A stretch of DNA of 63,613 nt, filler included, from Olpidium bornovanus S191 (taxonomy: Eukaryota; Fungi; Olpidiomycota), in assembly GCA_017911155.1 (NCBI GenBank). It is 28 parts of 28 records of this genome, joined end to end, with 100 filler letters (N's around TTAATTAATTAA, not from the genome) between each part and the next. Parts side by side here need not be neighbours in the genome. Positions count along the whole stretch, not along the records: positions 49,895 to 52,123 come from JAEFCI010007777.1; 27 more parts are not named here. One strand, given 5' to 3'. Position numbers and translations under genes: made by a program. The notes beneath the pieces were generated by a model. The model did not search any database. It was not told the DNA's origin and saw nothing but the letters and a program-made list of their open reading frames with translations. This document shows positions 8,470-52,123 of the stretch, piece after piece (position 1 is the stretch's first letter; each line of letters starts with the position of its first letter).

Positions 8470-10137
8470 GTGAAAAAGCAAATCTTTTTATATATTTTTT
8501 TTCCCCGCAGTGCTCCATGAGCTCCTCTCGTCGGTGGTTTAACCCCATTGTCTCCCTGTCTTACCGTATTTGAGAACCGTCAAAAGTGATCATGTATATA
8601 TGAAGTCTACATTACCTCGGGGCAGATGGGAGTTTCTTTCCAAGCTACGCTACGGTCCATTTCATTTTCCCTTTTTCCCCCCCCCCCCCCCCCCCTCCCG
8701 CCCCCTTTCCCACTACTGCTTTCCAAGCTCCACGTCTACCTCGGTTTCCCCGCTGCGACATACTTTTGCTTCTTTCGCAGTCCGTTCCCCTTTTGACCGG
8801 CCAACGCGAAGTCACCTGTGCTGTCGTTCGGTCACTATCCCGGGTGGATCGATGGCGCAGGAAGAAAAAAAAAAACCTGGCGCACGGGCGTGAGCGGCGA
8901 CGGACATGACAAGTTGAATTCGGGTCGGGCTGATTGGAAGAGCGTTCGAGGAAGGATTCGGCGGTATTCGGCGGAATACACGGCTTGGCGTCACGACAGC
9001 CAAGCCGCGGGTGATATCTGAGCATATATTGATTAGTGGGAAATAAACAGTCATAGCCAATAAGGACCGTGTATTCCTTGACCCAATGGTGTACCATTAC
9101 TGAAACAAGTGCCGCAGGACGGAGGACATTAGTGACAGGATTGTAGGAGTCTTATGCGCACCAGAAATGGCAGCCTTGGTAAACCTTGGCAGCATTAGCC
9201 GTTGAATCATTGGAAATATGCTCGGCTAACAGCATACGTGCCCTTCCAGTTGGACTTCCTTCATTTTTTCAAGAGAACGACCTTTGGCCGAAGGGCATTA
9301 GAAGTCCATGTTACGCCCGCGCGCACCGTTTGGGTGAGACGAGGCAAGTGACGTTTCGAGCCAAGAATCAACAGGATGCAGAGTTTAGGCGTCCAGATTC
9401 TTGAGGGACAAATATAAATTTGACAATCCACCAATATTACGCCGTTGAGCGCATCCTCCTCGATGGAGAAAACTTTATATAGTCAACAGAAGCTCGTCTT
9501 TCACGTTCAGGCCAGCGAGCTCATGCAAGAAGCTCTTAACTGGAAACGGGCCGTGCTCCATGGGATCTCGGTGCCATAAATAAACACCAGCCGGTCCATC
9601 GATCCCATGGCAATCGGCAATCATCTCGCGTGGATGCGTGGAGTAGTGACGGCCGCCGAGGAGCTGAATAGTCACCTCGTAAATCATTCGCCTGAGACGC
9701 ACCACACCGCCGCTTTTTCTGCCGGGGGACTTGTGTTTGACGGATCCGTTTGCGGCGACAGTAGGAATGTTTGTGGATTGAAACGGCAGCCGGATTGTTA
9801 GATCGATCAGCATCCTGAGGAGAGTTGGATACCACAGCTGCGCGGGCCAAACCGGCTGCAATCAGCGTCACCGTCGTCGCCCGGCTGATGCTTTGTGTTT
9901 GCCACAACCGGGTGGCACGAGGAACCAGGCAGACAGACAAGCTGGCTGTCACGTGGGGGCGACAGTTGTAAAAAAAACAAGAGGGGGGACGGCTGTGAGT
10001 GAATGGCAAAGGGAGCGTTACCAAAGTTCTGCAGCAAAAAAAAACCGGTGTTAGAGGATAGAAATCCGACGCGTAGAGAGTACAGTTGCGAATGAAGTAA
10101 TTTGGCTTCAGCGCGTCTCCGGGCGAACGCTTCTCCC

Positions 10138-10169
<32 letters not shown>

Positions 10170-10337
10170 ACCCAAACCCCCCCCCCCCCCCCTCCCCCCT
10201 GCCGCCGTAACCCCCTTCGTCGAATCGCCCTGTTAATNNNNNNNNNNNNNNNNNNNNNNNNNNNNNNNNNNNNNNNNNNNNTTAATTAATTAANNNNNNN
10301 NNNNNNNNNNNNNNNNNNNNNNNNNNNNNNNNNNNNN

Positions 10338-10500
10338 GAGGTGATGGCCGCGTCCGAAACATGCAAGAAAATCACATGGTTCCGGTGTCGGGTAATAACT
10401 CGACCCGACGTGAGTTTGCAGGTTGCTGTTGAGGATAGCCCGAGGCTCTATCGCTGCCGGGCGGCAAGGGACTTCTCTGCTGTCGAACACGCGTGCCCTC
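10338..10500 (+). mobile_element. Highly degenerate Ty1/Copia RNase H fragment
   Basis: EVMAASETCKKITWFR resembles AEYMAASEACKEAIWLR. A frameshifted EDS.RGSIAA resembles EDNQGAIAL. Confidence 0.45.
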
Positions 10501-49667: not shown

Positions 49668-50092
49668 CTGGGTGAAATAATGACGAAAGTTAATTTGGTG
49701 TAGACGTTGGCCCAAAGCAAACCCCCCCCCCCCCCCCCCCCCCCCCCCCGCGGTGTGAGCCGGGCTGGGGGTCTGGCGCCGCGGCGGCGAAGTCNNNNNN
49801 NNNNNNNNNNNNNNNNNNNNNNNNNNNNNNNNNNNNNNTTAATTAATTAANNNNNNNNNNNNNNNNNNNNNNNNNNNNNNNNNNNNNNNNNNNNCATGCA
49901 TCGTCACAGTCGCCGTCGCCACGATTATTCGGCTTCACCGAGAGAACCGGTCGCATTGTCAAGAACGTCATTATCACCATCGATTTCCTCACTTGTCCCA
50001 CTCGTCCCGGTTCGCCGACGAGGACACACCTGGCCCTCGTCGATAGCACCGTCAGTCGTCGGATTGCTTAGCGGTTCACTTCGGTCGTCTAG

Positions 50093-50170
50093 TCCGCATT
50101 CCCCGGCTAGACAATAACACCCTGCAGTGTGTGCGTCTAATCCGCATTCCCCGGCTAGGCAACAACACCC

Positions 50171-50215
<45 letters not shown>
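50093..50215. repeat. ~45-bp direct repeat running into a (TG)n microsatellite
   Basis: tccgcattccccggctag.caa.aacaccctgcagtgtgtg occurs twice, then (TG)n. Confidence 0.85.
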
Positions 50216-50216
<1 letters not shown>

Positions 50217-50641
50217 CTGCAAGGTGGGGAAGGGGGGTGGGCAGGGTGGCGGAAGATGTCGCGCGAAGAAACGAGAACGCGCTTCGACGTGAGAACAGGC
50301 GACCACTGTGAATGTCATAATTGAGACAAGATCGTGGCGCAGAGGCGAAGAATGCAAACCGAGCATTCGCTCGTTGACCGCCCGCGATGCAAGCACCGGA
50401 GGACGGCGCTTCTTAGCTACTAAATTAGCGACGGGCGACAGCGCACAATCTACGACAAAAAAAGGGAAATTGGTCAAAAGTTGGGCCACGGCAAAAAAAG
50501 GGGGACGTGCGTCGACTAAATATGATAGTGAAAATGAAAGTTGGGCGTAGATCTCGTTATTGGATTGCAAGAGGCTTGGAGTCGTCTTCCCAATGCCGAT
50601 CCAGACGGCCACCTTCTGCTTGATAGAATGGAGGGAACTCT

Positions 50642-51395
50642 TCACTTGTCGGCGAAAAACCTGTTCACGGCCTTGATGCCCTCGGAAACGGCGTGGGTGG
50701 CGAGGTCTCCGGGCAGAATGAGGCGGACCTACGCATATAACAGAAACCCCCAGCGTGTAACAAAAAAAGAGATCGCCGGCGTTGGCACAGAAACATACTT
50801 TCGGAACCGACGAAATGATTCGGCCTCGTACCGCAGTCTGGATCTCTCGTCCTGTCATGGTGGCGCGATTATTGATTTGGCAAAGGTGTCCGGCCTCCGC
50901 CGCGATCAGGCCGAACATGTCTGTGAGGAACGGCAAGCGACAGTAAGCGGCCAGATAGCCAAAAGGCCGTACACGGCGAGATCCGAAGACCGGGGATACT
51001 TGTGACGTGGCGGAGCCAGGAGACGCGTTCGCAATACCTTTGACAAAACTATCCAAAACGTCCATGGAAGTCTGCGAGATTTTGAACGCGGGCAAGGCGA
51101 CCTTGAGGACGCGGTAGATGTACCTGTTGAATGTTTCCGGGTTCCTGCCGCGGCGCGTGGTCCTTTTGGCAACGCGCTTCTTCGCGGCAACGGACTTCCT
51201 CGCCGCGACGGACTTCCTGGCGGCAGCGGGCTTTTCGTTTTCCTTGGCGATCGAGAGCAGCAGCTGCCCCGATGCGGCGGCGGAATTGGGCCTGGTCGGC
51301 GAGCTCGACGCACGTTTCGCTTTGGCGGCGGGCGAGCGCATGCGCGGGCGGGCGGACGAGGCGCGGAGCGGCGGAGAAGCCCGCTCAGAGCTCAT
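50642..51395 (-). CDS. Divergent histone H2B variant (177 aa) with an ~85-aa N-terminal tail
   Basis: Exons 51395-51038, 50920-50832, 50728-50642 give ETFNRYIYRVLKVALPAFKISQTSMDVLDSFVK|DMFGLIAAEAGHLCQINNRATMTGREIQTA|VRLILPGDLATHAVSEGIKAVNRFFADK*. Confidence 0.95.
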
Positions 51396-51554
51396 GCTAG
51401 AGCGTTCCGGTGTTTTGCGGGCTTCTGTTCCGTCCCCGCGAAGCCTCCTAGCTCTCCCCTTTCTACCCGCGTCGTCTTCTTATTCTTTCTTTGGTAAGGG
51501 CTGTGAGGGCAGCGGACCAGGCGGCGGCCGCCCGCGCGCGCCCTCTTCGCTCTC

Positions 51555-51690
<136 letters not shown>

Positions 51691-51934
51691 GTCTGTCTGT
51701 GTGTCTTTTTCGCCCTCTCTGGCCCGCGCGCCGTTTGGGTGGAAAGGAGGGGGGAGAAAGAGGTCGTTCCTGGAGGGGGAAAGAGGGAAATTGGGAAGAG
51801 AGAAGGCGGCGTTCCTGGTTGCGAAACGCGAAGAGAGCAAAAACGTGCGCGGGGGGGAGGTCTGACGGCTGGAGAGGAAGGGCCCCCCAATTTCCGCTGC
51901 ATACCTAACCTCAACTACCACAGAAACGGATGTG

Positions 51935-52123
51935 CCACGCATCAACGTCGAGCCCCGCACTGTTCGTGAAGCTCGGTCATCGCCGCACGCATCTCAATTG
52001 GAAGAAGCAATGCAACGAGAGATTTCCTCTCTTCGCACAAACGACGTTTTCGAGCTCGTACCGCGCCCGCCGAACATCCGCCTCGTCGACGGAAAGTGGG
52101 TCTACAAATTGAAGCTACTCCCA
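51935..52123 (+). mobile_element. Ty1/Copia reverse transcriptase N-terminal fragment
   Basis: EPRTVREARSSPHASQLEEAMQREISSLRTNDVFELVPRPPNIRLVDGKWVYKLK. Confidence 0.9.

Follow-up and report, generated by a model that had tools for sequence, protein, structure and literature searches.

Background

The histone H2B variants that have been well studied are those of plants, mammals, echinoderms and a few protists, and to our knowledge H2B is the least diversified and the least studied of the core histones. Canonical H2A and H2B genes are usually paired head to head. Exchange of lysine for arginine at the residue corresponding to K120 of human H2B and K123 of yeast H2B gives the classic non-ubiquitinatable H2B mutant, and the effects of H2B mono-ubiquitination (H2Bub) on the methylation of H3K4 and H3K79 are established from yeast genetics. 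The H2B of sea-urchin sperm possesses SPKK-type repeats in its tail, which are thought to bind linker DNA under the control of phosphorylation. ARKS-type mimics outside of H3 are also documented, and both H1.4 K26 and the automethylation of G9a represent such ARKS/ARKT mimics of H3. The plant H2B.S histones, together with Arabidopsis H2B.8, are fast-evolving, lineage-restricted forms that are tied to the compact, quiet chromatin of sperm and of the dry seed (PMC7410336, PMC9668745). Loss of the ubiquitin-acceptor lysine recurs in H2B variants, and has been observed in Arabidopsis H2B.8 (PMC7410336) and in human H2B.N (PMC11742582). A full-text search of the literature recovered no paper describing an H2B variant in fungi.

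Here we analyze an H2B gene from Olpidium bornovanus S191. All positions are those of the window, i.e. the whole stretch of 63,613 nucleotides of DNA that was analyzed. The piece at 49895..52123 (JAEFCI010007777.1, GC 0.58) contains a single clear gene, the H2B gene, which lies on the minus strand. The reading that we favor, with moderate confidence, is that of a solitary gene, transcribed and containing introns, which encodes an H2B variant restricted to its lineage, and whose product would be nucleosomal, would not be mono-ubiquitinated at the canonical site and would carry a longer, basic and phosphorylatable tail.

Results and discussion

Structure of the gene

The coding region extends from the ATG at 51395 to the end of the TGA at 50642 (minus strand), which is exactly the span of the original prediction (50642..51395), and it consists of three exons, separated by introns of 117 and 103 nt, that together specify a product of 177 aa. 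Exon 1 (51038..51395, minus strand), which is delineated by translation, splice sites, matches to H2B chains in the PDB and the transcript contig described below, encodes aa 1-119 along with the first base of the Asp120 codon, and covers the 86-aa tail followed by α1, loop L1 and the beginning of α2 of the histone fold. Intron 1 (50921..51037, minus strand; 117 nt, GTATTG...CACAG) is in phase 1 and splits a single codon, the GAC of Asp120. Exon 2 (50832..50920, minus strand) supplies the remainder of Asp120 and aa 121-149, which correspond to the remaining part of α2, L2 and the beginning of α3. Intron 2 (50729..50831, minus strand; 103 nt, GTACGA...GCGTAG) is in phase 0 and is followed by exon 3 (50642..50728, minus strand), which encodes aa 150-177 and the TGA stop, and contains the end of α3 and the H2B-specific αC helix. 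Without splicing, the frame continues into non-histone sequence after ...DSFVK, and it is the two GT..AG introns that restore the H2B. An in-frame stop precedes the ATG at 51395, with no other start codon between the two. The frame is intact, and the GC content at third codon positions (GC3) of exon 1 is 0.81 versus a GC of 0.49-0.60 in the introns. The strings on which the prediction had been based were all found in the product, namely the start of the fold (ETFNRYIYRVLK...), the C-terminal AVNRF, KENEKP at aa 51-56, AARKSVAARKSVAAKK at aa 58-73 and the SP sites. The existence of the gene and its identity as an H2B are far beyond chance.

Evidence for transcription and splicing

Expression and splicing of the gene are borne out by a 1030-nt Logan contig (run X2, k-mer depth 28.7), which aligns with no mismatch and skips exactly the 103- and 117-nt introns, the cut at intron 2 being placed at +2. 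The gaps in the alignment have CT..AC ends on the plus strand, equivalent to GT..AG on the minus strand, and hence transcription proceeds from the minus strand, and splicing follows the model. The contig starts at 50340 and delimits a 3' UTR of about 300 nt (50340..50641, minus strand). On the other side, positions 479-991 of the 1030-nt record define a 5' UTR of at least 155 nt (51396..51550, minus strand), beyond which the contig continues for 39 nt into a (CT)n / (AG)n microsatellite. There is no upstream ATG between 51520 and 51396. Searches with Rfam gave no match to the histone 3' stem-loop or to any other family. A small hairpin at 50373..50360 (minus strand, CGAGC GAAT GCTCG), situated just ahead of the 3' end of the contig (by roughly 20-30 nt), was considered as a histone stem-loop and rejected in the absence of such a match; we treat it as a chance occurrence.

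Among public sequencing runs the stretch was detected in 14 runs from 5 studies, all under one organism label, with word shares of 0.47-0.72 and none near 1.0. With the 220 bases of the introns spliced out, an mRNA is expected to share about 0.75 of the words, and the 14 runs are therefore most simply understood as transcriptome assemblies. This presence of transcript-like contigs across 14 runs and 5 studies does not suggest that expression is confined to a rare stage. From three runs of raw RNA reads labeled as that species (X21, X23 and X24, of about 10 million reads each), 0 reads were obtained, a result to be read with the proviso that the presence of the source organism in them is not shown and that the label is possibly that of a host.

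Genomic neighborhood

Within the piece, no H2A gene was found in the 730 nt upstream or the 750 nt downstream of the H2B gene. Upstream of the gene there is a (CT)n microsatellite (51550-51698) of about 75 units with few interruptions, which reads as (AG)n on the coding strand, within the 5' UTR or promoter. Also upstream is an ORF on the plus strand (51932-52123, ...LEEAMQREISSLRTNDVFELVPRPPNIRLVDGKWVYKLK) that is cut by the right edge of the piece. We take this ORF to resemble the N-terminal part of the Ty1/copia reverse transcriptase (...KWVYKLK), and there is no integrase upstream of it, so it would be a 5'-truncated fragment; it had no Pfam match at E <=1. Downstream, about 130 nt past the end of the transcript contig, two copies of a 48-nt direct repeat, 93% alike, are followed by (GT)20 (50086-50215).

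The histone fold and the position of the ubiquitinated lysine

In phmmer searches against the PDB the exons recovered colinear matches, and all the named ones were H2B chains except for one chain deposited as H4 (6kw3_T). The region of exon 1 spanning aa 50-118 aligns with residues 14-81 of yeast H2B.1 as its best full-length match (E ~2e-6). Exon 2 matches residues ~40-67 of H2B in fold-only chains (α2-L2-α3), with an E of 5e-4 for the single-copy chains, and exon 3 (VRLILPGDLATHAVSEGIKAVNRF) aligns with α3-αC of canonical H2B (E ~1e-6; 1.4e-6). When the exon pieces were scanned singly with Pfam, the Histone model PF00125 gave 13.0 and 15.4 bits for exons 1 and 2, respectively, the gathering cut-off being 26.4, and exon 3 had no match. 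Over the fold, 48 of 90 residues (~53%) are identical to a canonical H2B and about 47% of the positions differ. The colinear matches and this level of identity agree with the earlier description of the protein as a heavily substituted H2B.

Conservation is uneven along the fold. The first half of the fold, comprising α1, L1 and the first half of α2, is heavily changed; α3 and αC are nearly intact, with 17 of the 24 aligned residues of exon 3 identical to canonical H2B, and the H2B-specific αC helix (HAVSEGIKAVNRF) aligns with its canonical equivalent without gaps. The acidic patch is kept in the exon 3 alignment, where Asp157 corresponds to human E105 and Glu165 to human E113. The DNA contacts of L2, R86 and T88 in human numbering, are likewise retained, and a basic segment, KKRVAKRTTRRGR, precedes the fold. 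The end of α2 that faces H4 is altered (R79H, H82Q and Y83I in human numbering), as is loop L1; these three exchanges would predict a weaker docking onto H4. Judging from the sequence, the three-helix fold, αC, the acidic patch, the L2 contacts and the basic pre-fold segment would together provide the features needed for pairing with H2A and for seating in the nucleosome. Weak hints of a fungal affinity come from the yeast-like alignment of the tail, the RLIL shared with yeast H2B and the finding that the full-length matches to exon 1 in the PDB are led by yeast H2Bs.

The distribution of these changes bears upon the possibility that the locus is a transcribed but decaying paralogue, an orphan duplicate beside transposon debris, in which the motifs and substitutions reflect neutral drift with no dedicated role in chromatin. 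A solitary gene lying between microsatellites and a copia-like fragment, with a highly diverged α1, L1 and start of α2, would fit such a history, as would the weak statistics of the tail motifs and the failure to find a conserved orthologue among 1.84 billion representative proteins and in metagenome scans (both described below). However, a frame of 177 codons has stayed intact over three exons, both introns are precisely spliced and GC3 is strongly biased. Furthermore, α3-αC is nearly unchanged, the residues of the acidic patch and of the DNA contacts are retained, and the differences between the first two units of the tail repeat are all synonymous. Decay of this kind appears to us unlikely, and we continue with the reading of the gene as coding for an H2B variant.

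At the C-terminus, KAVNRF aligns gap-free with the canonical KAVTKY in the phmmer alignments to PDB chains. This places Arg172 (codon AGG, 50660..50662, minus strand) where human and yeast H2B have the lysine that is ubiquitinated (K120 and K123, respectively), and upholds the claim that the acceptor is missing from its canonical position. Two other lysines of this region, Lys168 (equivalent to K116) and Lys177 (equivalent to K125), remain. An engineered H2B K120R chain (9e3d) is among the best PDB matches of exon 3. The divergent H2Bs recovered in our searches also lack the lysine, with Asn in a protein of avocado (P0001), Arg in one of the star-nosed mole (P0003) and Ile in P0005.

Searches for relatives

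With phmmer, we searched 1.84 billion representative proteins exhaustively and obtained no orthologue. The search produced 9 matches at E <=0.001, the best with an E of 1e-6, and these are ordinary or other divergent H2Bs from avocado, the star-nosed mole, lupin and metagenomes, apart from P0006, a protein of 941 aa with 13% identity over the fold. In terms of fold identity, none of the relatives recovered by phmmer is closer to the Olpidium protein than canonical H2B is. A word search with exon 1 against 5.8 billion protein clusters returned 244 candidates, none of them significant, and the variant protein itself is absent from that collection; nor did the 439-aa read-through ORF have an exact record. 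A feature search of the ESM Atlas retrieved only generic H2B clusters, with scores <=0.85. Scans of metagenomes with peptides of exon 1 gave no match, and a degenerate EGIKAVNRF pattern gave 3, all of them chance occurrences in unrelated ORFs. Exon 1 also had no match among contigs of bacteria and archaea only, which is uninformative for a eukaryotic gene. Given that the variant protein is absent from the collections, its lineage may be unsampled, so the missing relatives are weaker evidence than they appear. Sequencing runs labeled as belonging to three further organisms have 7-24% of the DNA words in common with the stretch (0.24, 0.21 and 0.07), and may hold orthologues.

One candidate orthologue, P0005, was noted for its similar AKKTTRKGR and YRIYITRVLK strings and was rejected, as it is 37% identical over the fold and is encoded on an intron-less, gene-dense contig resembling those of giant viruses. 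This contig (ENA ERZ27313603 k141_260007, 58.6 kb; region 9597-10471) has densely packed intron-less ORFs that include a DNA ligase and a protein kinase, and carries a gene for a 106-aa H2A-like protein head to head with that of P0005, itself a divergent H2B-like protein of 156 aa. It has the appearance of a giant-virus contig carrying histone genes of its own. As a separate observation, the star-nosed mole protein P0003 (Condylura cristata XP_012582516.1) and the avocado protein P0001 (Persea americana KAJ8642933.1) are H2B models with internal duplications, in which there are 2-4 repeated half-folds. These duplications are probably artefacts of gene modeling or assembly over tandem genes for H2B variants.

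The paucity of relatives raises the question of whether the gene might be the only, canonical, H2B of Olpidium, in a lineage with fast-evolving histones, where the exchange of Lys for Arg reflects a lost H2B ubiquitination pathway rather than the function of a variant. The 2.2-kb piece shows no canonical H2B, missing close relatives are to be expected of an organism seemingly unsampled in the protein collections, and many RNA runs gave assemblies of the gene, which would be expected of a housekeeping histone. Against this, the gene has no H2A neighbor within the piece, although canonical H2A and H2B genes normally stand head to head, and the k-mer depth, at 28.7, is modest by the standard of a bulk histone mRNA. 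At 53%, the fold identity is much lower than the range seen among canonical H2Bs of different kingdoms, with P0004 and P0009 appearing much more alike over the fold by eye. Moreover, a Ser/Arg/Pro-rich extension and a recent repeat expansion, both found in the tail, are typical of variants. We accordingly regard a sole canonical H2B as improbable, and retain the interpretation of a lineage-restricted variant.

The N-terminal tail

The tail (aa 1-86; 51138..51395, minus strand) is composed of 19 Ala, 14 Ser, 14 Arg, 9 Lys and 8 Pro among its residues and has a net charge of +20, in accordance with the long H2B tail that had been predicted. Its first 49 residues form an additional Ser/Arg/Pro/Ala-rich extension that contains SP sites (aa 7, 21 and 32) as well as several sites of the RxS type, whereas aa 50-86 align with the ordinary tail of yeast H2B (AKENEKPAAARKS...) in the PDB comparison. 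Tandem Repeats Finder detected an array of 3.7 copies of an 18-nt unit in the latter part (51168..51233, minus strand; 79% matches), which codes for the hexapeptides AARKSV, AARKSV, AAKKRV and AKRTTR. Both ARKS motifs of the tail (aa 59-62 and 65-68, within AARKS at aa 58-62 and 64-68) fall inside this array and thus effectively represent one duplication event. The AARKS is identical to residues 24-28 of H3. Units 1 and 2 of the array differ at 3 positions, all of them third-codon and synonymous, which hints weakly at the peptide being under constraint. A candidate KEN box, the KENEKP at aa 51-56 (51228..51245, minus strand; KEN at aa 51-53), is aligned with KAEKKP of yeast. The alignment of KENEKPA with KAEKKPA, a motif of the ordinary fungal H2B tail, means that the KEN may be a drifted form of a standard tail element. 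The tail can be described as an ordinary fungal-type tail in which the 18-nt unit was amplified, and which is preceded by the 49-aa Ser/Arg/Pro/Ala-rich extension.

To assess the significance of the motifs, the tail was shuffled 200,000 times. One or more ARKS were present in 5.5% of the shuffles, a KEN in 1.1% and three or more SP in 12%. Two or more ARKS were present in 0.13%, a figure to be read in light of both copies stemming from one tandem duplication. Taken singly, and having been chosen post hoc, the short ARKS and KEN motifs do not go far beyond chance and constitute weak evidence; the ARKS arises from a repeat within a tail rich in Ala, Arg, Lys and Ser.

The original prediction had gone further for these motifs. 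It envisaged that the two AARKS cassettes are methylated and phosphorylated in the manner of H3K27/S28 or H3K9/S10 and read by chromodomains, that the KEN box drives turnover through APC/C-Cdh1 and that the histone is stage-specific. This model is a special case of the H2B variant favored above. It draws on the identity of AARKS to H3 residues 24-28, on its presence in two copies that differ only synonymously, on the low frequencies of two ARKS and of KEN in the shuffles, and on the documented existence of ARKS-type mimics outside of H3. The extended form KENxxP is that of functional KEN boxes, and KENEKP fits it. On the other hand, both ARKS derive from a single duplication in an array of 3.7 copies, in which the units that follow are AAKKRV and AKRTTR, 5.5% of the shuffled tails contain an ARKS and the motifs were selected after the fact. 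In addition, KENEKPA has a counterpart in the standard fungal tail, and no orthologues were found in our searches that could show conservation of the motifs. We hold the model to be very doubtful in this full form, and would take H3 mimicry and KEN-driven turnover as motif-level leads only.

A possible function for the variant

On the favored reading, the variant would replace canonical H2B in a subset of nucleosomes, and these nucleosomes would be devoid of the H2B mono-ubiquitin of the Bre1/Rad6 type. The methylation of H3K4 and H3K79 that depends on H2Bub would then be lost in the chromatin containing the variant. The +20 tail could add binding to linker DNA, and its SP and RxS sites could allow this to be controlled by phosphorylation. 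By analogy with H2B.8, the combined outcome might favor compact, transcriptionally quiet chromatin (PMC9668745).

A bolder proposal joins both ends of the protein: a natural K123R-type H2B variant of what is probably an early-diverging fungus would block the H2Bub pathway and at the same time display marks of heterochromatin on its AARKS cassettes, possibly in a dormant or motile spore stage. We consider this proposal a long shot. If true, such a variant with modified AARKS would be the first dedicated class of H2B variants to be described in fungi. Leaving this aside, the gene of the favored reading is of interest as one that is expressed, has no detectable orthologue in the collections searched and combines a long basic tail with what appears to be a naturally non-ubiquitinatable C-terminus. 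It would offer a natural test of the role of H2B ubiquitination.

Comparison with known H2B systems

The engineered yeast htb1-K123R and human H2B K120R alleles have the same exchange of Lys for Arg at the same aligned residue. The Olpidium gene differs from them in being natural, in having about 40 further substitutions in the fold and in its different tail. Like the Olpidium variant, the H2B of sea-urchin sperm has a lengthened and very basic N-terminal tail with Ser-Pro sites; however, Olpidium has only 3 SP sites, none of which is a true SPKK/SPRK repeat, and its repeat is AARKSV instead. The ARKS/ARKT mimics of H3 in other proteins resemble the Olpidium tail in that A-R-K-S belongs to a segment of a chromatin protein that is both basic and disordered, but in Olpidium the motif is part of a repeat array and could be compositional.

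Among the variants proper, the plant H2B.S and Arabidopsis H2B.8 are likewise highly divergent H2Bs with an extended, disordered N-terminal tail (PMC7410336, PMC9668745). The mono-ubiquitinated lysine is replaced in both systems, by Asn in H2B.8 (PMC7410336) and by Arg in the Olpidium variant. The origins are nevertheless independent. The 86-aa tail lacks KVVxETV, the motif conserved in the tail of H2B.S, which forms a clade of angiosperms (PMC7410336). No closer affinity was seen to the H2B.S-like protein of avocado, P0001, either, with 48% fold identity to the Olpidium variant as against 53% for canonical H2B. Among the germline H2B variants of mammals, H2B.W has a long N-terminal tail and H2B.N is without K120, each thereby sharing a feature with the Olpidium variant (PMC11514470, PMC11742582). 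The genes for H2B.W and H2B.N are solitary and have introns, as does that of Olpidium, and are confined to mammals. The star-nosed mole protein P0003, apart from the Arg at the K120 position, has LDSFVKDMF, RAT.T and LPGD in common with the Olpidium variant; its identity of 52% is the same as that to canonical H2B, and the common substitutions are therefore best read as convergence. In the Olpidium variant, the design known from plant H2B.8 and from the mammalian H2B.W and H2B.N would have arisen independently once more. By analogy with these systems, the recurrence of the design suggests that it may be a general way of making quiet or compact chromatin.
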